A program made the position numbers and the translations under genes. From the sequence record OR142618.1: a stretch of 64,000 nucleotides of DNA; one strand, 5' to 3'. Positions 2,668 through 20,658 of this stretch are shown in pieces. How positions within the stretch are numbered: position 1 is the stretch's first letter; every line of letters begins with the position of its first letter. Under the pieces are notes generated by a model that searched no databases, was not told the origin of the DNA, and saw only the letters and a program-made list of their open reading frames with translations.

Positions 2668-3207
2668 TTGGAAGTTAAAAGCATGTACTATGATAAACGT
2701 ATCCTACATAATATGATATTTCAAAAACCATTTATAGAATTAAATAGTATCCCAGATTACACTCATCCGGGCGGATTTGCATACCAACGAAAAAATCATA
2801 TACACGAAGGCGTAGACCTTTATTGTAAAAATAAAGAACCTGTGTTTACAATGTTATCGGGTAAAGTAGTTAATATAATAAAAGATTTTACAGGACCGGG
2901 CTGCGGAACACCTTGGTGGAATAAAACAAGTGCAATAGTAATAGAGGACGTATTCGGTGTATGGGTATACGGCGAAATATTAGTAGGAAATTGGATTAAC
3001 ATAGGAGATACTGTACCAGCTGGAACATGTATCGGCAGAGTAGAACAAGTGTTAAAAAAGAACAAAGGACGTCCTATGTCTATGCTTCACGTAGAACGAT
3101 ATACAAAAGGAACTACAAATTCTATTGGATTATGGCAATTAAATACTAGCAGACCTGAAAATTTATTAGATCCAACACCTTTGTTACGGCGTATCATAAA
3201 TGAATAA
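2668..3207 (+). CDS. M23 family Zn-metallopeptidase (peptidoglycan hydrolase-like)
   Basis: HEGVDL (HxxxD), PVFTMLSGKV, VPAGTCIGRV, MLHVE (HxE/HxH position) and C-terminal LDPTPLL. Confidence 0.8.
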   Translation: MEVKSMYYDKRILHNMIFQKPFIELNSIPDYTHPGGFAYQRKNHIHEGVDLYCKNKEPVFTMLSGKVVNIIKDFTGPGCGTPWWNKTSAIVIEDVFGVWVYGEILVGNWINIGDTVPAGTCIGRVEQVLKKNKGRPMSMLHVERYTKGTTNSIGLWQLNTSRPENLLDPTPLLRRIINE

Positions 3208-3541
3208 TATATTATATATTCAGAATTTTATAAGAAGTAGAAAATTAGAAGCAGAATACGGATGTATAGTTACCATTAATAATAATACAGGAGCTAGAGA
3301 ATTTACAGCATATCATCTCAAAAACTGGCATAATTGTTCATTTATATCCTATAATAATTGCAGTATAGATATTATTGCATTATGTAACCATACACACACG
3401 ATAGCATATGGAGCAGATAATGCAAGTTTTATAATAAAAAATAATAACAGAAATATACTACTGTCAGTAGTTGATACGAATATGACATATTCGTCTTGTT
3501 ATTCATCTTCTGTAATTATAAATATTTCTGTTTTATTATAA
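3200..3541 (+). CDS. small-ORF repeat-family protein
   Basis: ILYIQNF at the N-terminus and IIALCNHTHTI internally; overlaps upstream stop. Confidence 0.6.
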   Translation: MNNILYIQNFIRSRKLEAEYGCIVTINNNTGAREFTAYHLKNWHNCSFISYNNCSIDIIALCNHTHTIAYGADNASFIIKNNNRNILLSVVDTNMTYSSCYSSSVIINISVLL

Positions 3542-3542
3542 A

Positions 3543-3866
3543 ATGAATTTAATATTTTGTATAGCTAGCATTGATAATATACAAATAGGTATAGACCGGT
3601 CAATCGGACATATAAACAATATAATATATATCCGAACTAGCCCCTCTAATGATATAATCAAATATATAACAGAAGTAAAATATGGTAAAACAGTATCACT
3701 TATGTTAAATCTCGATATATCAATATTTAAAGAATTATTTATTTTTATTTTGTCATGTAAATGTAAACACATCACTGAACTAAGAATATACAATAAAGTA
3801 GTATTTTATTTTTATTCTGATAACAGAAGATCTTTAACAGATTTGTTATATTACATAGGTCAGTAA
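3543..3866 (+). CDS. hypothetical protein (AT-rich array)
   Basis: 107-aa ORF starting MNLIFCIAS, 1 nt after previous stop. Confidence 0.55.
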   Translation: MNLIFCIASIDNIQIGIDRSIGHINNIIYIRTSPSNDIIKYITEVKYGKTVSLMLNLDISIFKELFIFILSCKCKHITELRIYNKVVFYFYSDNRRSLTDLLYYIGQ

Positions 3867-3978
3867 CAGTACATTTACAGAAAAATATAATATCTTATGT
3901 ATTATTCATTATAAAAACTCTGTTGTGTTATTAAGTATTGTATGTTAGCGTACAAGTTAATTAAATGCGGAACACTAA

Positions 3979-4272
3979 ATGGATATTATTCTTTTTATAT
4001 CAAATAATACATACTATATAACATCAACGAGTAATAGCACATTCTTATTATACAGATTTGATCAAAAATGTATCTATGTTGTAACAAAAAATCTTAATTC
4101 ACATCCGGTAGTGATAGACGACGGAAGTAATGGCTGGGGGACAATATATGAGATTCCCGCATTAGTTCAGTTTTACACAGATATTTTTAAATTTTCTGTG
4201 CATCACGAGTTAATTCAAATATATGTGCTCACAAAAGTAGGTCAATTTTTCTCTAAGATTGTTACTTACTAA
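3979..4272 (+). CDS. small-ORF repeat-family protein
   Basis: MDIILFISNNTYYI ... ALVQFYTDIF. Confidence 0.65.
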   Translation: MDIILFISNNTYYITSTSNSTFLLYRFDQKCIYVVTKNLNSHPVVIDDGSNGWGTIYEIPALVQFYTDIFKFSVHHELIQIYVLTKVGQFFSKIVTY

Positions 4273-4594
4273 TACAATTGTACAATACATAGGTAATTTG
4301 ATGGACAATATATTTTATATTTCGTACGAGATAGCTGTCCAGTGTTCTAATATAACTACATTTTATTTAATTAATAAACACAATAGAGTATTTTATGCAA
4401 TACGTTCAGCCGCAGGACACCCAATCGACATTTTCGATTTTGATTGGAAACAAAAAATCTTACTAACGTCTAAATATTGTAATAAGCTTTTATTTATTAT
4501 TGGTAGAGAAAAGATACAGGTAACTACTACTAAGTTAAAGATATTTTATTGTCTTAGTAACGTATCTGCTAAATCGGATCAAGTTACACTATAA
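4259..4594 (+). CDS. small-ORF repeat-family protein (probable)
   Basis: Internal MDNIFYISYEI; packed in array. Confidence 0.5.
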   Translation: MLLTNTIVQYIGNLMDNIFYISYEIAVQCSNITTFYLINKHNRVFYAIRSAAGHPIDIFDFDWKQKILLTSKYCNKLLFIIGREKIQVTTTKLKIFYCLSNVSAKSDQVTL

Positions 4595-4814
4595 ATATCA
4601 CACCATTAATTTTAATTAGTGTATACTATTATTGTGACACTATTAAATATGTTAATTAGATAAAATAAATTATTAATGAAAAATCTATTTCCTACTGGAT
4701 GCATATTTAATATATTGGTATTATCTTATCACACAGATACAATATATGCTGTATGTTACTCAGATTGTCGTGTTATTGCACTAAACAGTTATTATACATA
4801 CTATATACCTTTAA

Positions 4815-5075
4815 ATGACTAAATTAATACTTACAATTTCTATTAATACCAAACAGATAGCATTATTAAACGATGTTGTGCATTTTCGAAATTATAATAA
4901 AATGGTATACTTTATAAATTTTTTATCTAAAACTAAGTCATTAATTATTATGGACAAGTTAATAACAGATAGTTTTATTATCTTTTATATAAGTGAAAAT
5001 TGTTCCGAAATTTATGTCACCCCTAGATATGCTTTTATATGTAATTTCAATGGGGTTGGGTTTTTTAGATCATAA
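4815..5075 (+). CDS. small-ORF repeat-family protein
   Basis: LILTISINTKQI ... IIFYISENCSEI (two units). Confidence 0.6.
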   Translation: MTKLILTISINTKQIALLNDVVHFRNYNKMVYFINFLSKTKSLIIMDKLITDSFIIFYISENCSEIYVTPRYAFICNFNGVGFFRS

Positions 5076-5106
5076 CTAGTTGTGTTAATTAGGATAACTA
5101 TACTTA

Positions 5107-5400
5107 ATGAAATATGATTTTATATTACATATGAGTAATAACACAAATTGTATTATATTCGACACAAGTATTACCTTTGTTGACAACAAAGGTATATTCT
5201 TTTATAAAATAATACCAATACACTTGCATGGTATGTGTAATTTTCCTTATATAGATAACAGTTGGTCAAACTATATTTCATTACCTATAATTATACAATA
5301 TTATACAAATAAACTGGTATATTTACCTTCTAAAATAGTTTTTCGTCAAAATAAATCTAATATATCAGCAGATACTGTATTTCGTACAAATATGTTATGA
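5107..5400 (+). CDS. small-ORF repeat-family protein
   Basis: FILHMSNNTNCI ... PIIIQYYTNKL. Confidence 0.65.
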   Translation: MKYDFILHMSNNTNCIIFDTSITFVDNKGIFFYKIIPIHLHGMCNFPYIDNSWSNYISLPIIIQYYTNKLVYLPSKIVFRQNKSNISADTVFRTNML

Positions 5401-5678
5401 ACGATGAATTAATACTATTGTTAAGTAAAGAGACTTATATAACATCATTTTCTCATAACTGTGTAGACTTGTTCAGCGCTGCTGGAATTATATTTTATAG
5501 CATATCTATACCATACATGGGTTCCCGTGCTGCTAGCAGAATACATCATTTATATTTGTGTGTGTTTACACTATCTCCTTTCATAATACAATCATTTTGC
5601 CGTGTAATATTCGATAATAAGTATACAATTGGCATAGCACATAATGGCACACTTATATGGAAAGGTCTTTACCAATAA
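5397..5678 (+). CDS. small-ORF repeat-family protein
   Basis: LILLLSKETYI ... FIIQSFCRVI; ATGA overlap with upstream gene. Confidence 0.65.
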   Translation: MNDELILLLSKETYITSFSHNCVDLFSAAGIIFYSISIPYMGSRAASRIHHLYLCVFTLSPFIIQSFCRVIFDNKYTIGIAHNGTLIWKGLYQ

Positions 5679-5746
5679 CTTTTTCAGTTGCTATAATATG
5701 CACAATGTGCAATAATAAAAACAATGTGCAATTGTGAATAAAATAC

Positions 5747-6052
5747 ATGAATATTATCATTAACATTCAAGCATCAACATCCGAAATCTTCTTTGACACA
5801 GACTGTATCACGTTAATAACGAGTTTAGGCGGTCATGTTCTTTCGATAAACCGAAGAACAGGAAAAGGCGCAGTTGTACTTCATAACATAAAGTTAGATT
5901 CCATATATCGTATTCTACTATTACAGCACACAACTACATCACTTGTTGTATGGGGTGCTGTGGACATTAAAGTATCATTTAAAGACATAGCCGATGAATA
6001 CATTTTCCTTGCTATAGGAAGAATACATTATCACGGCAAATGGTTAAAATAA
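5747..6052 (+). CDS. small-ORF repeat-family protein
   Basis: MNIIINIQASTSEI ... ILLLQHTTTSL. Confidence 0.65.
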   Translation: MNIIINIQASTSEIFFDTDCITLITSLGGHVLSINRRTGKGAVVLHNIKLDSIYRILLLQHTTTSLVVWGAVDIKVSFKDIADEYIFLAIGRIHYHGKWLK

Positions 6053-6321
6053 TTCCGACTATGCATAACATTCATTATGACGAAATTTTAGAAATATCTA
6101 ATAAAGCTAGATTAATTGTAATTTACTCTGGCATATGTTCTATATACACAAAACCTTCTGTTTATTATAATGTAAATTATAATTTTTATAGTAATCCATT
6201 TAGTTGTTGGAATAGGGCAGTATTTATAGCATCTAAACAATGCGGACGCATAATATTCACTAATAACCGGGTGCGTATATTAACTGATAAAAAAATAATG
6301 TGGTATTATAGTACTCTATAA
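6040..6321 (+). CDS. hypothetical protein (AT-rich array)
   Basis: 93-aa ORF, overlaps upstream. Confidence 0.5.
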   Translation: MVKIIPTMHNIHYDEILEISNKARLIVIYSGICSIYTKPSVYYNVNYNFYSNPFSCWNRAVFIASKQCGRIIFTNNRVRILTDKKIMWYYSTL

Positions 6322-6336
6322 GGTATAGATTGAAAA

Positions 6337-6645
6337 ATGGTATATAAAATACCTAATGACAAGTGTATGTTGTTAATATTTCTGAGTAGTGTCTCCGATA
6401 CTATACACATAGAATTCAGTTTTAGAAAAAGAATTAGAAAATATTTGCACACACTAAAAATATACAAAGAAGATAACATTTGCATATTTATAAATGGCAT
6501 ATTACTATTTAAAAAAGTTATATGTAACGATATGATAATTCCTATTTTGATACAATCGAACACAAGATCTATATCACTGCATAACAACTTCTTAGAAATA
6601 TTTTCTAACAGATATTATTTGACGTTATTTAGAAAACTGACATAG
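6337..6645 (+). CDS. small-ORF repeat-family protein
   Basis: LLIFLSSVSDTI ... PILIQSNTRSI. Confidence 0.6.
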   Translation: MVYKIPNDKCMLLIFLSSVSDTIHIEFSFRKRIRKYLHTLKIYKEDNICIFINGILLFKKVICNDMIIPILIQSNTRSISLHNNFLEIFSNRYYLTLFRKLT

Positions 6646-6665
6646 TCTTAAATAGGCAAAAATAC

Positions 6666-6917
6666 ATGATTGTTATACTTCTTTCACACTTTACACGTGA
6701 ACTAAATGCAGAATTTAATGAATTAAAACTTACTGTACATGGTAAAAGATTAGCGCAAATATATCCGACAGCATACATAGATACTAACGTCTTATGCCAT
6801 TATATGCGTGAACTTGATTTCTTACTATTATACATTTCTAACAATGCAAAAACGATACAATTAGACTATTCACACAGAATAATATTATATCACTCTCCTA
6901 TACCGCACTATATTTAA
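6666..6917 (+). CDS. small-ORF repeat-family protein
   Basis: MIVILLSHFTREL ... LLYISNNAKTI. Confidence 0.65.
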   Translation: MIVILLSHFTRELNAEFNELKLTVHGKRLAQIYPTAYIDTNVLCHYMRELDFLLLYISNNAKTIQLDYSHRIILYHSPIPHYI

Positions 6918-6949
6918 AGAGATAAGTATGTGAACTATCATTTAAATAG

Positions 6950-7318
6950 TTGCTGTACAGAAACTACATTATTAAACTCTTTTTTAATAAGCAAGTTAAT
7001 GTCTATCTAAACACTATGTGCAACCTACCATTTATTATATCAAATAATTCCTACACACTAACCTACGGACCAAATATAACGTCAACAGGAGCAGGCATAT
7101 ACATTGCCAATATATACGGATTTGTGTTTCTATACTCAGTTGTTACTATTTCTAATTTTCAAATATGTTTTAGTATGCTTAACGAAATAGATCCTTCGTA
7201 TTTGCAATACGAATGCGATTCAATAAAAACAATAAACACAAAAATGTATTATAGACTAAATGTCAATTCATTACTTAATACAATGATATGTAAAGAATAT
7301 TATGAATTTATTATTTGA
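6950..7318 (+). CDS. hypothetical protein (AT-rich array)
   Basis: 122-aa ORF; contains FIISNNSYTL and YLQYECDSI. Confidence 0.5.
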   Translation: MLYRNYIIKLFFNKQVNVYLNTMCNLPFIISNNSYTLTYGPNITSTGAGIYIANIYGFVFLYSVVTISNFQICFSMLNEIDPSYLQYECDSIKTINTKMYYRLNVNSLLNTMICKEYYEFII

Positions 7319-7586
7319 ATTATTAAGAAACACTAGTAAAATCATACCGCGTGATGGTCTAAATGCTGCTAGATTTATTCTTGTAAATACCCATTATATA
7401 AAAATAGCATCTTTTTGTTTATTATTTTCTACATGGACCTGCCGTACATTTTTAAGTATAAACCAGTTTCAAATGTCAGAATCTACGTTAGTTATCATAT
7501 CTAATAAAATAAAGAAGATCAAAAGAGTAAAAAAATCATACGCTTTAGTTTTTGACGAATCATATATTCTGTTGAAAATCAAATGA
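7302..7586 (+). CDS. hypothetical protein (AT-rich array)
   Basis: 94-aa ORF with coupled overlaps. Confidence 0.55.
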   Translation: MNLLFELLRNTSKIIPRDGLNAARFILVNTHYIKIASFCLLFSTWTCRTFLSINQFQMSESTLVIISNKIKKIKRVKKSYALVFDESYILLKIK

Positions 7587-7837
7587 TAATACATATCTCA
7601 CATTTAACACATATAATAAATGCATATTCTAAATATATAATCGTCACTAATAAAGCTAATGAAATTATACTTTGCAATTACATATATAACCAAACTAAAA
7701 TTTACATTAACAAAGTATTACCAAGTATCGACTTAATCTGTTATATTCAACATAACACAAAAACTATTAGTTATCCCATTGTAAATAGCCATTTTCTATT
7801 ATATCCATATCTTTGCAATAATGCCTTGGTTGTATAA
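7583..7837 (+). CDS. small-ORF repeat-family protein
   Basis: MIIHISHLTHII ... LICYIQHNTKTI. Confidence 0.65.
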   Translation: MIIHISHLTHIINAYSKYIIVTNKANEIILCNYIYNQTKIYINKVLPSIDLICYIQHNTKTISYPIVNSHFLLYPYLCNNALVV

Positions 7838-7839
7838 TT

Positions 7840-8139
7840 ATGGATTTTATTTTCCTACTACAACATAACACTTCTATTATATTATATAATAATATATCAT
7901 ATGGTATTATAGAATTATACACAAAAGACGAAGTTCCAGTATTAGACATAGAACTATCAAGTTCTATGTACATATATCAAGGTAATTTTAATGACAAAAC
8001 TGCAATACTCTATCTACAGCAAAATACACACCAGATACAAATAGATATAGATCCATATAATTTTATTATAAAAATGAGAAACATGTACTATAAAGACATT
8101 TATTATATTGTATTACATGGATTATATGGATTATATTAA
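7840..8139 (+). CDS. small-ORF repeat-family protein, duplicate copy 1
   Basis: MDFIFLLQHNTSII ... AILYLQQNTHQI; paralog at 8206. Confidence 0.8.
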   Translation: MDFIFLLQHNTSIILYNNISYGIIELYTKDEVPVLDIELSSSMYIYQGNFNDKTAILYLQQNTHQIQIDIDPYNFIIKMRNMYYKDIYYIVLHGLYGLY

Positions 8140-8203
8140 ACTTATCTCCGCAGAAGTAAATCAAATATATCCATATCTTTGCAATAATGCCTTGGTTGTA
8201 TAA
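8126..8203 (+). CDS. chimeric 25-aa junction ORF (N-terminus of the 8474 gene fused to C-terminus of the 7583 gene)
   Basis: MDYIKLISAEVNQI + YPYLCNNALVV*. Confidence 0.55.
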   Translation: MDYIKLISAEVNQIYPYLCNNALVV

Positions 8204-8205
8204 TT

Positions 8206-8487
8206 ATGGATTTTATTTTCCTACTACAACATAACACTTCTATTATATTATATCGTAATAGTATTATAGAATTATACACAGAAGACGAAATGCCAGTAAT
8301 AGACATAGATATAACAAATTCTATGTTCATATATCAAGGTATTTTTAATGACAAAACTGCAATACTCTATCTACAACAAAATACACACAGTATAGGTATA
8401 GAATCATCAAATTCTTATTATATGATAAGAATGAGAAATATGTACCATAGAAACGTTTATTATATTATAACACATGGATTATATTAA
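8206..8487 (+). CDS. small-ORF repeat-family protein, duplicate copy 2
   Basis: MDFIFLLQHNTSII ... AILYLQQNTHSI. Confidence 0.8.
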   Translation: MDFIFLLQHNTSIILYRNSIIELYTEDEMPVIDIDITNSMFIYQGIFNDKTAILYLQQNTHSIGIESSNSYYMIRMRNMYHRNVYYIITHGLY

Positions 8488-8758
8488 ATTTATCTCCGCA
8501 GAAGTAAATCAAATTAAAAAATCCACCCACCCTGGCAGCACCCGCGACGGCTTAACACTATATAACGTACATGACCAACCTATAATAGAAATAAAGATCC
8601 AAAAAATAATATCCCGTGCATATGTGCGTGCAAACTACGATAAGTTGTGTAATGAAATCTGCATTCTTTATATACAAAGCCAAACAACTTTAATATCTAC
8701 CACACGGAACACACTAGTAATCTTTACTTCCCACTATATAGTTCACTCTATCACATGA
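8474..8758 (+). CDS. small-ORF repeat-family protein
   Basis: MDYIKFISAEVNQI ... ICILYIQSQTTLI. Confidence 0.7.
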   Translation: MDYIKFISAEVNQIKKSTHPGSTRDGLTLYNVHDQPIIEIKIQKIISRAYVRANYDKLCNEICILYIQSQTTLISTTRNTLVIFTSHYIVHSIT

Positions 8759-9045
8759 ACCTAATATATACACTACAACATAAAACTAGATATATATCCC
8801 AATTTGATACTAATTTTGATACTACTTATCGTTTAATTAACTCAGATAGAAAATGCTTTTATCTTATAACACGCAAGAACAAAAAGACCATAGTAGACAT
8901 AGACTATAATGTCTTTAATGATATTTTCGGTATATTACATTTACAGTCTAAAACACATATACTACAACGTTCATACTACCTAATAAAAATATATGATGCA
9001 TGTACGGATTTAATATTTTTTATATACCACCACAACCATAAATGA
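8755..9045 (+). CDS. small-ORF repeat-family protein
   Basis: MNLIYTLQHKTRYI ... FGILHLQSKTHIL. Confidence 0.75.
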   Translation: MNLIYTLQHKTRYISQFDTNFDTTYRLINSDRKCFYLITRKNKKTIVDIDYNVFNDIFGILHLQSKTHILQRSYYLIKIYDACTDLIFFIYHHNHK

Positions 9046-9323
9046 AATTTATTATAACATTACAATCATACACAACTACAATACAGTTTCTAACTAATGA
9101 TTTTATATTATATTCTGATAGAAATAGATTATTAGAATTAGGTATATACAATAACAAATTCAACTGTTACATACATATCAATAATTTTAATAATAACAAT
9201 ATAATCTTGTGTTATCTTCAGCATATAATTTATACAATACACATTCATCCCTTTGTTTTATCGATGTGTAATAGTAATTGGTTATCAGTTAATACAAAAT
9301 GTTATTCAAGAAGACTTTACTAG
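9042..9323 (+). CDS. small-ORF repeat-family protein
   Basis: MKFIITLQSYTTTI ... ILCYLQHIIYTI. Confidence 0.7.
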   Translation: MKFIITLQSYTTTIQFLTNDFILYSDRNRLLELGIYNNKFNCYIHINNFNNNNIILCYLQHIIYTIHIHPFVLSMCNSNWLSVNTKCYSRRLY

Positions 9324-9329
9324 ATCCGA

Positions 9330-9720
9330 TTAGTAATGAATGATAGAAATCACTATACTATAACTAATGAGTGATAATACTAATAGATAGCTATAATGAG
9401 TGATACTAATAGATATCAATACTAATACTAATATTGATAGATAGCTATAGTGTACAAATAATGAGTGAATTATATAGTACATATTTCGGTGAATACTGAT
9501 ATAATACCAATAGATAGTGATACTGATAGACATCGATACTAATACTGATAGATAGAAACTATAGTGTAACAAATAATAAGTGATACTAATAGAAGCTATA
9601 GTGTACAAATAATGAGTGATAGTGATAGTGTACAAATAATGAGTGATAGTGAGTGATACTAATAAGATAGTGATAGTGTACAAATAATGAGTGAATTATA
9701 TAGTACATATTTCGGTGAAC
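9330..9720. repeat. purine-skewed low-complexity tract of degenerate short repeats
   Basis: Reiterated tagtgtacaaataatgagtga and gatactaatagatagcta; tacaaataatgagtgaattatatagtacatatttcggtgaa occurs at about 9453 and 9681. Confidence 0.85.
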
Positions 9721-10000
9721 CCTAACATCACCGAAGAAAGAAGGACCAAAATTTTGGAAATCTTGCTCTATAGGTCCCATCCATTTTCTTCCCAGTTACA
9801 TTCATTTTCTTCCCAGTTACATTCATTTTCTTTCCATTTCTAACCATTTCTAACCATTTTTATAGATTTTTTTTGGAAAAATCCGTTTTCTGCTATATAG
9901 GGACCTTCTTATAAAATATAATCTTTTTCAATAAAAAATATTTTTTTTGAAAATTTCCAATTCTTGCTATATAGGCCGGTTTCATTATATATTCCCGTTT
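9720..10000. repeat. pyrimidine-rich tract with short direct repeats
   Basis: ttttcttcccagttacattca x2, ttctaaccatt x2, TTGCT(A/C)TATAGG-like x3 (about 9764, 9889, 9964). Confidence 0.7.
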
Positions 10001-10125
10001 GCATAACATATACGGAATATAGTATGCTATACGTATATAAACCGTGACTCTAGACAACTCACTTACTGTACGCTTGTTAATATAATTCCATTTCGTAGTA
10101 TAACGTATATACAGGACAACTAGTT

Positions 10126-10395
10126 ATGGATCTGATACTATTTCTTCAACATAATACTGTAGAGATGGACTATAGTGAATGGTACGTTCGTCTTAACAAC
10201 AAGAATGAAAAGCATATAGCTATGATTACAGGTAACGGTATTAGACTGTATTATAGAAATATTAATAGCTTACTTGGTATTCTTCATTTACAATACTGTA
10301 ATTATAAATTTTTCATGCATACGGACAATTATATTTCTTTTACTTTTGCTAATAATAATAGGTTTGTACATGAAATACATGTTGATTTGAAATAA
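10126..10395 (+). CDS. small-ORF repeat-family protein
   Basis: MDLILFLQHNTVEM ... LGILHLQYCNYKF; AGGA upstream. Confidence 0.75.
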   Translation: MDLILFLQHNTVEMDYSEWYVRLNNKNEKHIAMITGNGIRLYYRNINSLLGILHLQYCNYKFFMHTDNYISFTFANNNRFVHEIHVDLK

Positions 10396-10398
10396 TAT

Positions 10399-10716
10399 AT
10401 GGATTTCATACTATTACTTCAATCTCAATGTCATGAGATTGTATATACCAAACAAATTATTGATATGCTTAATGCGCATGATGATAGGCAGTTTGTATAT
10501 GGAATTACGTTGCCTATGGGGAGAAAACATGTGACATATAAGGCATATTGTTTGTATAATAATATATGCGATGTGATAGGTTTATTACATATGCAATCTA
10601 TTCTATCGTTAATAGAAGTTAAACATTTAAAATCAGTTTCTGGTAAAACAGATATTATTGTTAATATGGTGTTTGCTAACGATTTTCTTCAATATGCTAT
10701 ATATTTATGGACTTAA
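10399..10716 (+). CDS. small-ORF repeat-family protein
   Basis: MDFILLLQSQCHEI ... IGLLHMQSILSLI. Confidence 0.75.
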   Translation: MDFILLLQSQCHEIVYTKQIIDMLNAHDDRQFVYGITLPMGRKHVTYKAYCLYNNICDVIGLLHMQSILSLIEVKHLKSVSGKTDIIVNMVFANDFLQYAIYLWT

Positions 10717-10991
10717 TATTATTATTTCAGTCTCGTTGTTGTAAGATTTGGTATTCAGATTATATTATAGATATGATCGACTATAGTGATTATACTATAG
10801 TATCATTACTACGCCCGCCGAATGGGCGTATGTATGCCTATTGTTCGTGTAACAATATATACAACGAAATTAGTATAATGCATTTGCAGAATAGCATACA
10901 TTCATTACAAATAAGTTATAGTACCCGTTCTATAATGTGTCGTATGACTAATGTGTATGAAGATCTAATTCAATATATTAGTATACTTTAG
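10707..10991 (+). CDS. small-ORF repeat-family protein
   Basis: MDLILLFQSRCCKI ... ISIMHLQNSIHSL. Confidence 0.75.
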   Translation: MDLILLFQSRCCKIWYSDYIIDMIDYSDYTIVSLLRPPNGRMYAYCSCNNIYNEISIMHLQNSIHSLQISYSTRSIMCRMTNVYEDLIQYISIL

Positions 10992-10993
10992 TA

Positions 10994-11269
10994 ATGTATT
11001 TTATTTTGTTTATACAGAGATTGTGTTGTTCGATTAGAAGGGCTTCGCATGGATTCGATATTTTTGATACAAATGAAGTAGCATATTCATTAATAGATCA
11101 TCATGGTTTCAGTATGAAACATTTTGTTTCATACTCTGTTATAAACGATGTAATAGGAATTATACATTTACAAGTGCATACAAATAAGTTTTATTTTCTT
11201 AATGAAAAACATCAAATGGATATGATTTGTTTTCTAGATAGTAAAGGCGGTCATTTTTTTAGTTTATAG
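10994..11269 (+). CDS. small-ORF repeat-family protein
   Basis: MYFILFIQRLCCSI ... IGIIHLQVHTNKF. Confidence 0.75.
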   Translation: MYFILFIQRLCCSIRRASHGFDIFDTNEVAYSLIDHHGFSMKHFVSYSVINDVIGIIHLQVHTNKFYFLNEKHQMDMICFLDSKGGHFFSL

Positions 11270-11281
11270 AGGACGGAATTT

Positions 11282-11545
11282 GTGTTATTAATATTAATGC
11301 TTCAGCGTAATGTCGAATGGATTCTTTATACTGATTGTGAAATTCGACTTGTTCTGCCCGATTATAATACGTTATATCGTTTTCTAATTCAGATACAGAA
11401 AATTAATGGGTATCTAAATTGCCATGCTAGTAATGACATTGTAGGTATGTTTTATTTACAGTACAATTGTGATACTATATCATTTAATAGATTTGATGAA
11501 TTTATGATACTAAACCACAATGGCGTAATAATTTTTGGCTGGTGA
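11282..11545 (+). CDS. small-ORF repeat-family protein
   Basis: MLLILMLQRNVEWI ... VGMFYLQYNCDTI. Confidence 0.75.
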   Translation: MLLILMLQRNVEWILYTDCEIRLVLPDYNTLYRFLIQIQKINGYLNCHASNDIVGMFYLQYNCDTISFNRFDEFMILNHNGVIIFGW

Positions 11546-11841
11546 CTAGTATGGATATTATATTGATCCTTAGCAGTGAAGTTATAAGAATACAAGGTTG
11601 TTTTTATGATATAGAAACTTTACAAATAAGGTTCTTCAATAAATACGACTCAATATATTCTTGTAATAAAATGGGAGGATTTGTTAACTATAAAACATTT
11701 CCCAATGAACTACTAAGTATAATTCATTTGCAGCAGAATACACATAGGTTGATAACACACGGTAAATGTATATTTTTTGATAGTGTAGATTTTATTTCTA
11801 TTCACTGGGAGACTTTGTTTGACACAAACGAATATGTATAA
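11542..11841 (+). CDS. small-ORF repeat-family protein
   Basis: MDIILILSSEVIRI ... LSIIHLQQNTHRL. Confidence 0.75.
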   Translation: MTSMDIILILSSEVIRIQGCFYDIETLQIRFFNKYDSIYSCNKMGGFVNYKTFPNELLSIIHLQQNTHRLITHGKCIFFDSVDFISIHWETLFDTNEYV

Positions 11842-12085
11842 TGATATGAATTATATATTACTAATTAGTAACCAGTCTAAATATATTTCGTTGAAGGCAC
11901 TTGGATTAACTGTAAAAACACGTGAACCAAGGTTAACTCATTATATTATATTTTAAATATGAACGAAGAATATGATATATTATATTTGTCTAACAATACT
12001 ATGCAAATAACATTTCGTTTTTCAGTATATTGTTTTTATGATAAAACTCGTAGTATTATATATTGTCAATAAGACAGAAATATAA

Positions 12086-12400
12086 ATGGATTTAATATTA
12101 ACACTTCAGCATAAAACTGTGCTAATATCACAGTTTAGTGCATTATTTGTATTTCAAAATATAAACAGTGATACTATATTTTGTTTGGATATAAGTAGAC
12201 ATGTATATTATTTCGAAATAATATTCAGGTTATATAATAATAAGAATGGCATGGTGTATTTGCAACATGCCATTAATTCTATTAAGTTTACCTTTAGTTT
12301 ACAATATCATACAATTCGTGGATATTCTAGTATACCATCTATATATATGTATGATAAAAAATATGCTATTGTACACGTACCATATGTTAGGAATACTTAA
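12086..12400 (+). CDS. small-ORF repeat-family protein
   Basis: MDLILTLQHKTVLI ... NGMVYLQHAINSI. Confidence 0.75.
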   Translation: MDLILTLQHKTVLISQFSALFVFQNINSDTIFCLDISRHVYYFEIIFRLYNNKNGMVYLQHAINSIKFTFSLQYHTIRGYSSIPSIYMYDKKYAIVHVPYVRNT

Positions 12401-12699
12401 TGGATCTTATATTATACATTCAGTACAGTGCTCATAAAATAGAAACTGTTTATAAATCATATCTATTTTATAGTAATAACTATTCACTTTATTACAGACT
12501 GTCTGTATATAAGAGATTATTGGTACCATCGGGTAGTGAATCATATGCAAGGGCTTCGGCTGAATATTCTGCTATTACAGACAAAATAGGAATTATACAC
12601 TTACAATCGAAAACACACGCAATATTATTTGTTATAGACAGTATGTGCATTCACGACAAATCGTATCAAACACTCCATTATATTATACTAAGGTCATAA
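12400..12699 (+). CDS. small-ORF repeat-family protein
   Basis: MDLILYIQYSAHKI ... IGIIHLQSKTHAI; TAATG coupling. Confidence 0.75.
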   Translation: MDLILYIQYSAHKIETVYKSYLFYSNNYSLYYRLSVYKRLLVPSGSESYARASAEYSAITDKIGIIHLQSKTHAILFVIDSMCIHDKSYQTLHYIILRS

Positions 12700-12798
12700 T
12701 GTTTATAAGTTTTATTCCGCCTGTTGCAATGTTGATACGACTACAATCAAATCTACATATTATCTGTTTTGATTCTGTTTATGATAGTATAGTGTTTT

Positions 12799-13080
12799 GT
12801 GATAAAGACTACGACGAAATACATTGCTGCTTATGGTAGCGTGTTTGCATTTAACGCAAAAACATGTTATACAGTATTGTTTGTTGAGTATTTTGACATT
12901 GTTGTTTCTAAAAATCTTTTATATAAAGGATTAATATGCATAATATATTTAAATTATCATATTGTACAAATATGTTTAAATTTAAAATATTATGGGATCA
13001 AAAAGTATACCTATGCTCGTTTATGTCATTGCGGTATACTACCCTATATATTTCTGCAGGTCGTATCAGATAAATGGTAA
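12799..13080 (+). CDS. hypothetical protein (AT-rich array)
   Basis: 93-aa ORF; start uncertain. Confidence 0.4.
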   Translation: MIKTTTKYIAAYGSVFAFNAKTCYTVLFVEYFDIVVSKNLLYKGLICIIYLNYHIVQICLNLKYYGIKKYTYARLCHCGILPYIFLQVVSDKW

Positions 13081-14400
13081 CAAATATATTAGAATTAATG
13101 TATGTATGTCACCATACATATAATATAACAACTGACAGCTACTATAACATTTTCTTCTTAAATAAAAATAATAAAATTATCTTTGTTGTGTATTAAAACA
13201 AATGGGAATATTTCTCTTATCACGCAATACTTGCTATATTTGTGTTATACATGTCAGACGCATTGTATACAAGATTAAAATGTATGACAGACATGGCAAT
13301 TATGTGTGTACAATTAATGTTATCTAAGAACATATTAAATTATATAGAATTTGGTTGTATGTAATACAGTTTAATAATGGCAACAGATATTGATAAAATA
13401 ACATACATTTCATTTAACTCATGCTATATATCAGTTAATCGTTTTAGTGTTATTATATATTATGAGTACGGTAGATTGATTTTATATGATGATACCCCCG
13501 GGCTTATATAAGAACGTATTCTACATACAGTATAATGTACGTCATATCAGCATATATTATTTTGATGCATGTGAATGTAATATATTACAAGTAGAATGCA
13601 ATAATTTTCTTACTCTAACATATAAATTAAATGAAAAAACCAATAAGTAATATAGTTGAATTATCGCTTAATACGCACCGGTTTAATACCAATTATATAA
13701 CTAGTGCTCATTGTTTAGTATTTTATAATGCGTCGTCATATCCTATACATTATGTTCGTTTACACACAAACAAACGTTAACACTTATGTCGCCGGTATCA
13801 ATTCATAATATAGTTTGTATTCAACACTATCTTAATAGATGGTATACTAGAATATCCCCAACAGGTATTAATGTGTATTCAGATTCATATGTTAGAATTA
13901 GAATAAATGTTCATAAATAAAAATATTATAAATCACGATATACATTATGATATGTTGCAGGTATCTTCATGCGCACATACAATAGATTCATCGCTATGTA
14001 GTACATATCTATTGGCATGCATTTATAATAGTAATGAAAAAATTATTATAATTAGTGTTGCATATCTAAGATGAATGGTATAAAAGATATAATAGAATTT
14101 TCATCGCATGCATACGAAATATGTGCAAATACAGCAAGACTTAGAGATATAGTATACTACTCGATACTCATAAAGGCAAAAGACGGTCTTGCATTTTATA
14201 TGGTAGACTCGTTTGCATATATAACATGACCAGTATCCTTGAATGTTCTTACAATACTTCTAATATTAGGTTTCGTTTTTGTAAAAACAGTGGCATTTTA
14301 ATTGTGAACTTTCTAAACAAAAATGATGACATACATTTCATTGTAATAATTAGATACAAATATACATATCGTTAATTACTAATACATAGGAGAGTAATAA

Positions 14401-14535
14401 ATGAATAGAGCAGCAAAGAAAAATGTTTCTATATTTGTTATTCAGAATCATACTTTTAGAGTTCATGTTGTACGATATGATCCTGCGAGAATTTCAATAT
14501 ATCTCTCACTTGTACATAATTGTGTTGCATCTTAA
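14401..14535 (+). CDS. single-unit micro-protein, 44 aa
   Basis: AGGAG RBS; MNRAAKKNVSIFVIQNHTFRV... Confidence 0.6.
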   Translation: MNRAAKKNVSIFVIQNHTFRVHVVRYDPARISIYLSLVHNCVAS

Positions 14536-14643
14536 GAACTATATCTGTATAATGTAGGTTACATTTGCATGTATAGGATTATCTTTCATATAATATATGC
14601 TTATTAACTATACGACATGTATTGAATTACTTTATAGTATTGT

Positions 14644-14790
14644 ATGATTCGTAAAAATATAGTTCTAATATCACATAACACGTCAAAAATAATATTAGAA
14701 AGAAGAACAAGCAAAGTATTACGTGTTTCTATATTTAAATCAATCGGAAAATACTACTACCATTATTATACAACGTGTGGGAAACTATAA
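14644..14790 (+). CDS. single-unit micro-protein, 48 aa
   Basis: MIRKNIVLISHNTSKII...; TAATG-coupled to next ORF. Confidence 0.55.
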   Translation: MIRKNIVLISHNTSKIILERRTSKVLRVSIFKSIGKYYYHYYTTCGKL

Positions 14791-14930
14791 TGCAAGATCA
14801 TCATTTCACTACACTGTTGTATATGTCTAATCGTGCAGATAGAATAAAGATTTTTCGACAGCCTTCCTGTCTTATTGTATATATTAAGTCAGGTATGTTA
14901 TATATTAATAAACAATTCTTAAAATGTTAG
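14790..14930 (+). CDS. single-unit micro-protein, 46 aa
   Basis: MQDHHFTTLLYMSNRADRI... Confidence 0.55.
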   Translation: MQDHHFTTLLYMSNRADRIKIFRQPSCLIVYIKSGMLYINKQFLKC

Positions 14931-15700
14931 AATATATAGATACTCTCAAATATAATTACATTTTAACTGTATGCAGCGGTGTAGAGTCTATATCATTTGA
15001 ATCATTTACTAGATCAGTAATATCAGTTTCCATAATATATAATAATATTACTATCTTTCCGTACCAAACTACACGAACTATACTGTATGGTGTATAATCT
15101 TATTTTTATTTCTTGTAATGTTTCTTTAATTAGTTTTTCTATTTTTAATAAAACATTTGAAGTTTATATTTATGGAAAAATGTTAGTGGTAATTTATTGT
15201 ACAGGACTACATATATGTTAGATATATTGCTACAGTTCCAACGCAGGGTGGATACAATTAAGATGGAGTTAATGTGGCGTCACTTGCATTTTTATGAAAA
15301 AGCCGGCGAGGAAATTGAGTTATTTCATGCTATATTTCTGCCGCCCGATCACCGAAGTATTAATTAATAAAATTCTATAACAAAAACAAGTTGTATTTTT
15401 CGGCATAAAAATTTATGAATAAAGATACAAACAAAGAATCACCTATTATTAAAGAATTATATTTTATATTAAGATTGTAAGTAAAATAAAATACTTTTAG
15501 AATCTAAAACTAAAATGATCGATTGGGTATTTAAATTGTCTGCTAGTTGCTACGAAATAGACGGACAACACAGTGAGTCAATAAGAATATATAATTCATA
15601 TTGTCTTTTAGGAACTATACAATGTTATTGTGCTCAGTTAAAAATAAATTTATATAAATTTTAATATTGTGGGAAGAATTCTTTTAAATAGGCATACTAT

Positions 15701-15844
15701 ATGAATGATCTATTACAATATCAACTCACATTATGTTCCATATCTTTGCAGAAAGCTCGTTTTAAGTCAGGCAATGTGTATTACATTCTAATTGAACGTA
15801 ACGACAGCGGTAGGTATTCCCGAGATGTAAAAATACTTAAATGA
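15701..15844 (+). CDS. micro-protein, 47 aa
   Basis: MNDLLQYQLTLCSI... Confidence 0.45.
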   Translation: MNDLLQYQLTLCSISLQKARFKSGNVYYILIERNDSGRYSRDVKILK

Positions 15845-15845
15845 T

Positions 15846-16016
15846 ATGCGTATATTTGTAATATCACAAAATTGCATGACTATCAGACTTTTTTATCATA
15901 CATATTTCATTAAAGATGTAAATTATGATTCAATTTGTGTGTTATATAAAACGAATAGCAGAATTGTAATACATCCGAGTTTTACAGTAGATGAATATAT
16001 TCGATCTGTCTTATAA
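15846..16016 (+). CDS. single-unit micro-protein, 56 aa
   Basis: MRIFVISQNCMTI... Confidence 0.55.
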   Translation: MRIFVISQNCMTIRLFYHTYFIKDVNYDSICVLYKTNSRIVIHPSFTVDEYIRSVL

Positions 16017-16179
16017 TTCTTCATTTATTTTGATGAAATCGAATAGAATATACATTAGTAATAATATCTATCGTGTAGGAGCTATATATGTATTACCTGC
16101 AATAACGAAATATATACATCAAATATTCTATGTAAACGCTGCAATATATAGATTTTTAGATACAGGTATACTAGTATGA
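15991..16179 (+). CDS. single-unit micro-protein
   Basis: MNIFDLSYNSSFI. Confidence 0.55.
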   Translation: MNIFDLSYNSSFILMKSNRIYISNNIYRVGAIYVLPAITKYIHQIFYVNAAIYRFLDTGILV

Positions 16180-16364
16180 AATTCAATATATTTAAATTGC
16201 AAAGAAGATGTCACATTATAAATTGTCATTTTTATGACATTCTTAGATTTTCAAAACCTACATATTTTCGAGATGCTGATAGAATAACTATATTTTCATT
16301 AATAGGTACTAATAGTATCAGAATTTACGAGGATATGTATAAAGGATATGCACAAACCATATGA
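16176..16364 (+). CDS. single-unit micro-protein
   Basis: MKFNIFKLQRRCHII; ATGA overlap. Confidence 0.55.
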   Translation: MKFNIFKLQRRCHIINCHFYDILRFSKPTYFRDADRITIFSLIGTNSIRIYEDMYKGYAQTI

Positions 16365-16672
16365 TTGAAATATTAATATTTTCGAGTGTTAGTGATTATA
16401 TTAATATAAGCCACGATATGGCACGGCTATATAATCTTAATGGTGTTAGTGAATTAATATTTGCATCAAAACCATACAAGTATATTATATTAACTAATTT
16501 AAAAAATCGTATAGGTATATTCTGTATTTCAAATATAATAAGTGAAAGGGTGATGGGAGATATTACTAGTAATGAATGTTGGGCTTATCCTTGGCCTCCA
16601 GATACTGGCATAGATGTATATATTGATTTCCTGTATAAAAATGATGAGCTTTCTACTAAACACACAATATAA
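16361..16672 (+). CDS. small-ORF repeat-family protein
   Basis: ILIFSSVSDYI ... IFCISNIISERV. Confidence 0.6.
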   Translation: MIEILIFSSVSDYINISHDMARLYNLNGVSELIFASKPYKYIILTNLKNRIGIFCISNIISERVMGDITSNECWAYPWPPDTGIDVYIDFLYKNDELSTKHTI

Positions 16673-17836: not shown

Positions 17837-18115
17837 AAGTTATGCGCTGTTGCATACGTAAATACCTCCTATGTTGTTTAGATATGTCGATTCTGGTATA
17901 ACCAGATAGACCTAAGGATGATGCTAGTGATTCCTTAGTATTGTATATTCTAGCTGAGTATAAAGAGTAAGGGGCTTTATACAAATAACAATTCCTTAGG
18001 CAAGATATACCGCTCCGTTGTGCTGACGAGCATAATTTGCCCAGATACAGAGCACGTGACTGGTCTGAGGAGCATTTATATCAGAAAGGCAGACTTATGT
18101 TTGCCTTTCTTTTTG
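17837..18115 (+). ncRNA. putative small RNA (ncRNA-2)
   Basis: Lies between a promoter and an intrinsic terminator, has no credible ORF, forms several hairpins and carries ACCUCCU near the 5' end. Confidence 0.6.
18084..18115 (+). terminator. intrinsic terminator
   Basis: gaaaggcagac-ttat-gtttgcctttc followed by T-tract. Confidence 0.8.
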
Positions 18116-18129
18116 AGCAGATATTCTCT

Positions 18130-18300
18130 TATTCACTTCCTTATTCATTTCTTTATTCATCTCTATTTCGTTTGTCACTTCCTTATTCATTTCTTTATTC
18201 ATCTCTATTTCATTTGTTATTGCAAATAAGACTAATTCTTATTTGCGTTTGTAATTTCATTTGTTATTGCAAATAAGACTAATTCGTATTTGCATTTGCA
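18130..18300. repeat. pyrimidine-rich direct repeats
   Basis: cttccttattcatttctttattcatctct x2; catttgttattgcaaataagactaattc x2. Confidence 0.85.
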
Positions 18301-19494: not shown

Positions 19495-19731
19495 ATGTCT
19501 TTAACTATATTTTCTATATCAGCTAATTTGTATACAATAACTTGGTATTCTGCGCAACTGACACAATGGTGTTATATAGACATAATAACACGCGACGCTA
19601 ATATTTTTATAACCTATCCATTTTATAATAACATATTTGTATCTAAAATTAGTTCTAATACAATAATTGAAGAAAAAATTGAAGAAAAATATGAACACTA
19701 TATTAGAGATATGTCGTGGAATAAGAAATGA
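19495..19731 (+). CDS. hypothetical protein
   Basis: 78-aa AT-rich ORF. Confidence 0.5.
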   Translation: MSLTIFSISANLYTITWYSAQLTQWCYIDIITRDANIFITYPFYNNIFVSKISSNTIIEEKIEEKYEHYIRDMSWNKK

Positions 19732-20391
19732 CTATATAACAGTCAATAATTTTACATATGACTACTATCTAGAGGTAAACACACCTGCGTTTTCTTTAAT
19801 GATAATTATTCCGACAGTTCCTATATTAGACAATATTTGCATTACTTTTATAAAAAAGTATTAATATGAATATATTCTTTATATCAAACAGTCTATCTAA
19901 TATACTATATCATAAAGCTTATGATATACATATGATAGATATTAAGATTAATAATTCTACTTCTATTTGGCTTACATATTCTTTCAATATTACTAAGGTA
20001 TCATTTAAATATATTATCTGATTCGTTTTCTTATTGTATGAGTTGCAATTGCAAATTACTCTTATTTGTAATTGCATATAAACAATCAGTTGCTATTAAA
20101 AGTATTTGCTGTTAATATATTATATAACAGTGCAATTGATATTTTAAAATACAGTGTGCAATACATCTTACATGTATTAAAATTTGTGTGTTACTTATTT
20201 TGCATTAATGATTAATATACCTCTCCTACAGTACAAAACTCATACTATAAACAATTTGTTCGGGCGATCGTTCTCGAAAAGTATACAAGTGAGAGATAGC
20301 AATCTAATTATACTTGTTAGTTTCTATATAGAAGGTTCTAAATATAGAAAATTTGTATATAACAAAGAATACCTCAAAGAGATTTCAGCAT

Positions 20392-20658
20392 ATGCAAACA
20401 ACAATCGTTAATGCCCTAAAATCTATTAATGTAAAGTATTCGGATATATTTTACACAAATGGTAATTTGTGTAATACCGTTACAATACGAAATATTCGTA
20501 AAAATGGTAAATTAGATTCGGCAGAACAAATTAATGTAGAATCAGTTGTGAGCAATTATTTGATTCAAAAAGATTTAAATTTGCCCTTTTCTATTCAGTG
20601 GGCAAATAATGATTGTTGCGAAGAGTATACTACACTTATTCTCTTCTTCAGAAAATAG
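20392..20658 (+). CDS. hypothetical protein
   Basis: ORF MQTTIVN... (ATG within track ORF 20353). Confidence 0.55.
   Translation: MQTTIVNALKSINVKYSDIFYTNGNLCNTVTIRNIRKNGKLDSAEQINVESVVSNYLIQKDLNLPFSIQWANNDCCEEYTTLILFFRK

Follow-up and report, generated by a model that had tools for sequence, protein, structure and literature searches.

What are the many small genes that crowd one end of the genome of Pseudomonas phage Callisto, all annotated in the databases as 'hypothetical protein', and what could they do for the phage? We addressed this question in a window of 64,000 nucleotides (nt) from sequence record OR142618.1, position 1 of the window being record position 186001; coordinates below are those of the window. 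Callisto is a PA5oct-like jumbo phage of Pseudomonas aeruginosa (genus Wroclawvirus, family Arenbergviridae). An original prediction, made from the DNA letters, had seen at 3200-13080 (record positions 189200-199080, 100% identity) about 20 adjacent genes of one superfamily, each built from two copies of a unit of ~50 residues, and had taken them for an accordion-expanded, diversifying family directed at host defence proteins. Our analysis shows a family of ~20 two-unit and ~21 one-unit genes (~40 in all), in which one unit occurs ~60 times over ~13 kb, or 4-5% of the genome. That the family exists, is built of repeats and is coding is secure.

A family of two-unit genes

Pairwise comparison with phmmer linked ~12 open reading frames (ORFs) as a core, and a profile hidden Markov model (HMM) made from ten ORFs recruited 16 full-length ORFs and no reversed-sequence decoy. 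These 16 core ORFs, all on the + strand, encode 86-105 amino acids (aa) and lie within 3979-12699. In a leave-one-out search, run on the full set of 363 ORFs of the window together with reversed decoys, each was recovered by a profile of the others (E values from 6.6e-5 to 6.3e-15), and no decoy was reported. Significant profile similarity among members, a check set beforehand, was therefore found for all 16. Iteration (inclusion E<0.01) added four more full-length members, which we call the extended set, with the best decoy at 0.03 or worse; it also brought in a C-terminal remnant. The features of the array are as follows, dN/dS being the ratio of nonsynonymous to synonymous substitution rates.

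3979-4272, + strand: core two-unit member, 97 aa (leave-one-out E 6.6e-5; dN/dS 0.15 against five phages)
4815-5075, + strand: core two-unit member, 86 aa (leave-one-out E 5e-5; 1-nt indel in the MIJ3 and PA5oct orthologues)
5107-5400 and 5397-5678, + strand: two divergent two-unit members of the extended set, ATGA-coupled (iterated HMM; unit HMM E 1.3e-4 and 5.5e-3; dN/dS 0.47 and 0.11)
5747-6052, + strand: core two-unit member, 101 aa, orthologue of PA5oct EST35_0450 (leave-one-out E 5e-6; second-highest RNA contig depth within 5700-11700)
6337-6645, + strand: ORF whose C-terminal half contains a single recognisable unit, perhaps a divergent member (unit HMM E 3.2e-5 over residues 65-94; hhalign P 0.002)
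7583-7837, + strand: two-unit member of the extended set, 84 aa (core HMM E 1.6e-3, and E<1e-3 for the orthologues in Paride, Cassandra, MIJ3 and PA5oct)
7840-8139 and 8206-8487, + strand: core two-unit members, a young tandem duplicate pair (Tandem Repeats Finder period 357, 1.9 copies, 86% match)
8474-8758, 8755-9045 and 9042-9323, + strand: three overlapping, coupled core two-unit members (leave-one-out E 4.8e-8, 8.4e-15 and 2.7e-7; ATGA junctions)
9324-10125, no strand assigned: non-coding, repeat-rich gap of 802 bp that splits the array (degenerate direct repeats of 21-64 nt)
10126-10395, 10399-10716, 10707-10991, 10994-11269, 11282-11545 and 11542/11551-11841, + strand: six contiguous core two-unit members (leave-one-out E 1e-6 to 6e-15)
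11926-12069, + strand: member remnant, C-terminal unit only, no start codon in context (core HMM E 2.5e-5, positions 46-85; unit HMM E 8.8e-5)
12086-12400 and 12400-12699, + strand: two TAATG-coupled core two-unit members (leave-one-out E 7e-10 and 6.9e-10)
12699-12839, + strand: 46-aa ORF with one unit (unit HMM E 1.9e-3, segment 12564-12836; hhalign P 0.0015)
12936-16364, + strand: 21 tiny non-overlapping ORFs of 40-62 aa, one unit each, most opening with the family motif
16361-16672, + strand: the last of the two-unit members (extended set), 103 aa, orthologous to PA5oct EST35_0033 (iterated HMM, full length; dN/dS 0.42)

Eight ORFs of 3200-13080 were not individually demonstrable as members (3200-3541, 3543-3866, 4301-4594, 6040-6321, 6666-6917, 7016-7318, 7302-7586 and 12799-13080; hhalign P 0.01-0.2, mostly better than reversed controls). 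Several of them align in register across most of their length, and on this basis they may be very divergent members; we left them out of the count. The predicted number of ~20 superfamily genes thus holds, as 16 leave-one-out plus four iterated members, and the family exceeds the range first reported, but not every gene is adjacent to the next.

The three motif pairs quoted in the original prediction were found in the translations, MDFIFLLQHNTSII / AILYLQQNTHQI in 7840-8139, MDLILYIQYSAHKI / GIIHLQSKTHAI in 12400-12699 and MYFILFIQRLCCSI / GIIHLQVHTNKF in 10994-11269. The high divergence described between motifs is borne out by a median pairwise identity of 21% between paralogues. Coupling of the genes was also confirmed, with four ATGA overlaps, two TAATG overlaps, and several gaps of 1-3 nt or overlaps of 8-17 nt.

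Further small + strand ORFs that open with a similar motif occur on either side of the array (627-974, 1189-1521, 19495-19731, 19866-20021 and 20208-20411, the last starting MINIPLLQYKTHTI). With the profiles of the family, such flanking motif-like ORFs (627-2243 and 19495-20411) score weakly (iterated E 4e-4 to 0.08; hhalign P 0.003-0.16). Judging from these motifs, the superfamily may extend to both sides of the array.

One 45-residue unit, used in pairs or singly

Each two-unit protein consists of two copies of one unit of ~45 aa. An HMM of the N-terminal halves recovered real C-terminal halves in register, at E values from 4.7e-7 to 1e-2, and its top six matches were all real, above all 336 reversed or shuffled decoys. 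The C-half profile gave weaker results in the same direction against the N-halves, and all 32 halves co-align across ~45 residues. The motif is thus repeated mid-protein, as predicted, with a unit slightly shorter than the ~50 aa first proposed. The unit opens with (M)-D-h-I-h-h-L-Q/S-x-x-T/C-x-x-I, and two or three short strand-like segments follow, with a D/N-rich turn between them. We considered a leucine-rich-repeat-like motif and rejected it, as the spacing is unfit and no Pfam match was found.

In composition, the proteins favour Ile, Leu, Tyr, Asn, Ser and Phe, with I, Y, N and F at 35% of residues, and contain little Ala, Gly, Pro or Glu. Charge varies among the two-unit proteins, whose isoelectric points (pI) are 4.8-9.3 and whose median net charge is -0.5. 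Most of the tiny single-unit proteins are basic, with a median pI of 9.4 and a median net charge of +3.

The 21 tiny ORFs of 12936-16364 open with motifs such as MGIFLLSRNTCYI, MIRKNIVLISHNTSKI, MRIFVISQNCMTI and MKFNIFKLQRRCHII. Their unit-HMM scores exceed those of 231 composition-matched decoys (Mann-Whitney p 4e-9), with 14/21 above the decoy 95th percentile and 9/21 above the decoy maximum, and a profile of the tiny ORFs aligns in register with the unit profile (P 2.7e-5, probability 74%). From these similarities we read the tiny ORFs as single-unit members of the family. Their orthologues are intact in 99 of 103 comparisons. Their dN/dS is 0.41 in frame, and this constraint is frame-specific, since the other two frames give 0.83 and 1.13.

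The array is coding and under relaxed purifying selection

Over 3200-16672, where the G+C content is 27%, the + strand holds 28 ORFs of at least 80 aa starting with ATG and the - strand none; shuffles of the same DNA yield a mean of 0.26 such ORFs per strand and a maximum of three. With the threshold lowered to at least 40 aa, the + strand holds 55 ATG-ORFs, which cover 86% of the DNA. Orthologues of the two-unit genes in Deifobo, Paride, Cassandra, MIJ3 and PA5oct have no in-frame stop, and their indels are mostly multiples of three. At residues conserved among paralogues, synonymous codons are mixed (Leu as TTA, CTA, TTG or CTT; Gln as CAA about as often as CAG; Ile as ATA, ATT or ATC), which indicates a constraint on the protein and not on the DNA.

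Amino-acid polymorphism among orthologues is 8.0% at family-conserved columns vs 14.3% elsewhere (Fisher p 0.001), in agreement with the claim of a conserved motif core within a variable rest. Pooled over the 16 core genes, dN/dS is 0.56 (bootstrap interval 0.38-0.86), vs 0.07 for the neighbouring M23 peptidase gene at 2713-3207, which served as a control for strong purifying selection. Pooled in this way, the core genes show relaxed purifying, not positive, selection.

Many array starts sit directly on the preceding stop (ATGA, TAATG), and translation of the array may rely on coupling or on A-rich leaders. Single-base indels or stops were noticed in some orthologues: those of 4815-5075 and 16361-16672 in MIJ3 and PA5oct, that of 14226-14375 in PA5oct, MIJ3 and Paride, and that of 15846-16016 in MIJ3. 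They reflect either lineage-specific loss of members or sequencing errors in homopolymer-rich DNA. The last two-unit gene, 16361-16672, has an orthologue in 4/4 of the other phages whose sequence reaches that gene.

An old array with one young duplicate pair

In all six phages compared (Callisto, Deifobo, Paride, Cassandra, MIJ3 and PA5oct), the core members number 15-17 and their order is unchanged, showing that the array is old and nearly fixed. The only difference in copy number concerns the 7840/8206 pair: both copies occur in Callisto, Deifobo and Paride, and one in PA5oct, MIJ3 and Cassandra. The single copy in PA5oct is also seen in RNA contigs from infection, which skip 366 nt at 7840-8487.

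The two copies, 7840-8139 and 8206-8487, have identical 40-nt upstream flanks. Over the whole pair, dN is 0.186 and dS 0.093, a ratio of ~2.0. The motif blocks hold no nonsynonymous and one synonymous change; outside the motifs dN is 0.29 vs a dS of 0.11 (~2.5), an excess that is not significant (binomial p 0.12). This is suggestive of diversifying selection on the pair outside the motifs.

The claims made about evolution thus fared unevenly. A tandemly expanded family of paralogues with an internal duplication is well supported by the profile and half-vs-half searches. The word 'accordion' fits the tandem paralogues and their difference in copy number, but there is only one such change in a near-fixed array. 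Likewise, 'diversifying' finds a hint in the young pair, but the pooled ratio of the core genes is not that of positive selection.

The family is restricted to Wroclawvirus

A profile search of 1.84 billion protein representatives returned 15 clusters, all of them PA5oct-group orthologues. Four long repeat proteins from the same search were rejected as chance sharers of a short LLQQK-like helix motif. Among 50,697 phage records searched by tblastn, the 11 Wroclawvirus records alone matched. At the nucleotide level, 3200-13080 shares 93-95% identity with ten other records of PA5oct-like jumbo phages, in which the end of the window that holds the tail genes is at 98-99%. The family is restricted to this genus.

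Searches of other collections gave no relative. No Pfam-A family matched any of 34 members at E<0.01, no PHROGs v4 family matched the nine array ORFs scanned, PADLOC-DB gave one stray match (1/34 members, E 0.005), and PDB sequences gave none at E<1. No similarity to known anti-defence or defence families was found. Look-alikes in the ESM Atlas reached a best score of 0.41, which is meaningless. The family is not described in the literature that was searched (PA5oct, MIJ3, Callisto, Paride-related and Wroclawvirus).

AlphaFold2 gave two models. With a 16-sequence alignment, the predicted local distance difference test score (pLDDT) was 69 and the model ran helix, four strands, helix, three strands, the N-terminal half being confident. 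With a 34-sequence alignment, pLDDT was 57, with strands only and unstructured motifs. Structure searches (Foldseek against PDB, BFVD and AlphaFold DB clusters; VIA-align) returned no significant match. The best Foldseek E values were 0.25 in PDB, 0.009 in BFVD (an uncharacterised PaBG protein, template modelling (TM) score 0.40) and 0.024 in AlphaFold DB, and the best VIA-align Z was 4.1, where chance best matches typically reach Z 7-8. The predicted 'pseudo-dimeric scaffold' stays a putative reading of the sequence: the two models are discordant on the secondary structure of the motif, and no fold matches significantly.

Glyoxalase-type modules and cyanovirin-like repeats recur among the weak matches to the first model and are leads only. 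Cyanovirin-N and the beta-alpha-beta-beta-beta modules of the glyoxalase/VOC fold have a two-repeat layout of a size similar to that of the array proteins. The array proteins have no sequence similarity or significant structural match to them, and the model compared is of low confidence. The glyoxalase/VOC match stayed at Foldseek E 0.25 and TM 0.38 (VIA-align Z 3.0-3.7, residues 38-94 of the pLDDT 69 model), and the cyanovirin-N-like match at E 0.13-0.21 and TM 0.25-0.29 in AlphaFold DB clusters, with no Pfam match.

The array straddles the boundary of the PA5oct terminal repeat and is present in infection RNA

The PA5oct record is cut at window position 9728/9729: record positions 1-420 correspond to window 9729-10138, and the record ends at 9728. 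The annotated direct terminal repeat of PA5oct, 39,080 bp long (record 1-39,080), thus begins at 9729, a boundary set by read coverage for PA5oct, not Callisto. Because this start falls within the gap at 9324-10125, the repeat boundary runs through the array. Just ahead of the right-hand repeat copy are eight core and three extended members. Inside the repeat, as its first genes, are eight core members, all the tiny ORFs and 16361-16672, and the six core genes of 10126-11841, orthologous to EST35_0002-0007, come first among them. Genes inside the repeat are present twice per packaged genome and lie at its left end.

Among the repeats of the gap are a ~43-nt unit present six times, which ends in TAGTGTACAAATAATGAGTGA, and a 21-nt unit, CATTCATTTTCTTCCCAGTTA, present three times; one copy of a 64-nt repeat ends exactly at 9728. 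The gap may hold a packaging or terminus signal, or early promoters. In Deifobo and Paride it has been annotated as 'CRISPR'. We rejected this assignment: the copies are 61-91% alike and overlapping, their spacing is irregular (27-226 nt), and there is no spacer structure. Coding sequences annotated on the - strand of the gap (e.g., 9586-9780) are probably repeat artefacts.

As to expression, RNA sequencing contigs from PA5oct infection (four runs, 2020; a PA5oct variant) were compared over window 5700-11700, and they cover this interval except for the gene copy missing from PA5oct. The k-mer depth varies from ~200 to ~24,000 (~100-fold), with peaks at 5700-6100 and 6705-6905, and this unevenness argues against plain DNA carry-over. 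A silent array had been named beforehand as what would speak against the original prediction; these contigs, although unstranded, suggest transcription of the interval that they cover.

Infection by PA5oct depends on host RNA polymerase, and early transcription comes almost entirely from the Watson strand, which is the strand of the array (PMC7318152). Of the 105 genes in the 39,080-bp repeat, many are strongly transcribed in the early phase, and those named as highly transcribed early genes are most of gp34-gp105, plus gp450 (PMC7318152). We take EST35_0450, the orthologue of 5747-6052, to be this gp450, an assignment made by locus tag and with which the depth peak at 5747-6052 agrees. A promoter-like site with a TG-extended -10 lies ahead of this gene at 5668-5697. 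A scan for promoter consensus sites was uninformative in DNA of 27% G+C (172 sites vs 157 expected). Mass spectrometry of PA5oct virions identified 93 proteins (PMC7318152). None of the PA5oct array orthologues bears the 'ESI-MS/MS' structural flag in the record; the nearby EST35_0038 does.

What the proteins may do

Our preferred reading, held tentatively and with a little less than even confidence, is that these are early, host-directed binding proteins that serve the takeover of the cell, counter-defence included. We favour it because the proteins are small, bear no enzyme signature, combine a core motif with variable stretches, exist in one- and two-unit forms and vary in charge, and because their genes are genus-restricted and sit at the genome end, on the early strand. 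The family would be a set of genus-specific, soluble and probably non-enzymatic proteins of Wroclawvirus jumbo phages. The conserved motif would form the core of each protein and the fast-changing stretches between motifs its surfaces, which would grip different host, and possibly phage, macromolecules during the takeover. Single units would presumably pair up into the same two-unit body. The genes, placed head to tail and many of them translationally coupled, would be read early by host RNA polymerase. We infer the binding function, the host targets and, for members other than gp450, the early timing. That the proteins would be decoys or inhibitors of many host defence proteins, as first proposed, is a plausible hypothesis with which the data are compatible. 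We give little credence to a stronger version, in which the ~40 genes would form a combinatorial repertoire of modular pseudo-symmetric binders, each neutralising a different host defence or takeover target; single units would then self- or cross-pair, and fused two-unit chains would fix the favoured pairs.

Several observations weigh against these proteins being early binders. The RNA contigs are unstranded and come without a silent control stretch, and gp2-33 and most of gp442-460, that is nearly the whole family, fall outside the published list of highly transcribed early genes (PMC7318152). A dN/dS of ~0.5 fits weakly selected genes too. For the two-unit genes the out-of-frame control did not discriminate (0.56 in frame; 0.51 and 0.89 in the other frames), and we did not use it as evidence of coding for them. 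Shine-Dalgarno motifs (GGAG, GAGG or AGGA, 4-18 nt upstream of the start) are few: 5/20 two-unit genes and 3/21 tiny genes have one, as do 5/15 longer genes elsewhere in the window. The literature searched holds no functional data on the family. Finally, there is no confident structure, and the two models conflict on whether the motif is a helix.

A rival reading is that the genes are mostly dispensable passengers: a small gene repeatedly duplicated by unequal recombination near the genome end, with copies drifting under weak selection and few or none of them important for infection. The pooled dN/dS of 0.56 against 0.07 for the M23 peptidase, the remnant at 11926-12069, the single-base indels in some orthologues (4815-5075, 16361-16672 and 14226-14375), the 93-94% identity of the region between phages, where tail genes reach 98-99%, and the position of the array, gp450 excepted, outside the list of highly transcribed early genes (PMC7318152) are all as expected from drift. 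Yet paralogues only ~21% identical have been kept by six phages as 15-17 intact core copies in order, and an unselected ORF of 90 codons would soon gain stops in DNA of 27% G+C, as the 0.26 ORFs per strand of the shuffles illustrate. Moreover, the motifs are under selection today (8.0% vs 14.3% polymorphism; dN of 0 in the motifs of the young pair) and the constraint on the tiny ORFs is frame-specific (0.41 vs 0.83 and 1.13). We consider passengers unlikely, though a serious rival. An origin as mere by-products of A+T-rich repetitive DNA, with no real gene family behind the ORFs and motifs, might be suspected from the extreme composition (I, Y, N and F at 35%) and the few Shine-Dalgarno motifs. 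It is refuted for practical purposes by the asymmetry of long ORFs (28 vs 0), by the failure of composition-matched reversed or shuffled decoys to score, and by protein-level conservation with mixed codons and intact orthologues.

Other roles have been weighed too. They could be nucleic-acid-binding regulators or architectural proteins, small, beta-rich and two-fold symmetric, that would bind the A+T-rich DNA of the phage or its transcripts, for example in control of the early-to-middle switch or in protecting or organising the incoming genome end. The one- and two-unit architecture would imply a two-fold symmetric body, as in many small DNA binders, the tiny proteins are mostly basic (median pI 9.4, net charge +3), and the genes adjoin the genome end and a region of iterated repeats. 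However, the two-unit proteins share no common charge (pI 4.8-9.3, median -0.5), no known DNA-binding family or fold matches, and forty diverging paralogues are hard to square with one conserved target; we regard this role as unlikely, though likewise a serious rival. Packaging into the virion, followed by injection with the DNA and action before transcription, seems very unlikely: its sole support would be the small size of the proteins and their position near the genome end, and no array orthologue is flagged as structural in the PA5oct record, with the proviso that small proteins can escape detection.

Neighbouring features

Upstream of the array lies a gene that is not a member of the family.

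2713-3207, + strand: M23 peptidase (Pfam PF01551, E 3e-5, below the gathering score; PHROG endolysin families)

No relative of this peptidase was found in IMG/VR. A little upstream of it is tilS, the tRNA(Ile)-lysidine synthase gene noted in the MIJ3 paper (record 185910-186521); both genes show conservation throughout the genus. Scans of the window for tRNAs and for Rfam families came back empty. An organelle or bacterial origin of this DNA was considered and rejected, as it has no tRNA or rRNA and its identity to phage Callisto is decisive.

The G+C content is 26-29% across the first 16 kb of the window, and that of the whole genome is 33.3% (PMC11079468). Within the presumed terminal repeat the array is at 27%, the stretches 18-20 kb and 24-26 kb reach ~42%, and those of 26-28 kb and 46-48 kb reach 51-52%; at 48-50 kb, close to where the repeat is expected to end on the right (about 9729 + 39,080), the value has returned to 28%. 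These strong swings (window 16000-48000) suggest a mosaic origin of the early region. Tandem repeats of 42-47 nt (82-97% match) occupy 18106-18298, near the site, estimated from offsets only, of PA5oct ncRNA001, a 'putative lncRNA' (long non-coding RNA) defined by RNA sequencing at record 8263-8498.

Some names in the PA5oct annotation also caught our attention. 'Phosphoglucomutase' is a 48-aa single-unit ORF (window 14644-14790, EST35_0023), 'CLIP-associating protein 1' is the orthologue of 7302-7586 (EST35_0455, window 7260-7586), and a small ORF nearby, EST35_0037, bears the name 'extensin-like protein'. In view of how small these ORFs are and of their composition, all three names look like spurious low-complexity matches.

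Known systems and significance

Large virulent phages are known to carry host-takeover modules in long terminal repeats, such as the terminal redundancy genes of SPO1 and the pre-early genes of T5. Like these, the array packs numerous small genes whose fold is unknown into a head-to-tail row on one strand, within or next to a long direct terminal repeat; this strand is the one read early by host RNA polymerase. Unlike these, which are unrelated small genes, the array is one unit multiplied ~60 times in ~40 genes; half of its two-unit genes lie just outside the repeat, and strong early transcription is documented for gp450 only. Multigene families or 'gene accordions' near genome ends are also known from African swine fever virus (the MGF families) and from poxviruses (the terminal families). 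The array resembles them in being made of strongly diverged tandem paralogues by a genome terminus, with some difference in copy number, a young duplicate pair and fast divergence in variable parts. It differs in belonging to a bacterial virus, in its much smaller proteins, in being near-fixed (one copy-number change in six phages) and in a signal of positive selection that stays at p = 0.12. If the combinatorial repertoire were real, it would rank with the largest expansions of one gene family in any bacterial virus, and phages would have their own equivalent of the multigene families at the genome ends of giant eukaryotic viruses.

PA5oct-like phages are therapeutic candidates against P. aeruginosa, and one of the group, Paride, kills dormant cells. 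Of the genes of these phages, ~86% are 'hypothetical'; ~40 of those now reduce to one 45-residue building block, turning forty separate unknowns into one testable question. The public record can be corrected as well, since 'CRISPR', 'phosphoglucomutase' and 'CLIP-associating protein 1' in this region look spurious. Should the genes be dispensable, ~13 kb could be removed or replaced in phage engineering. If, on the other hand, the proteins bind host targets, many small inhibitors of Pseudomonas functions or defence systems could be drawn from the family, which would also be a clear case of gene-family expansion as an evolutionary strategy of phages.

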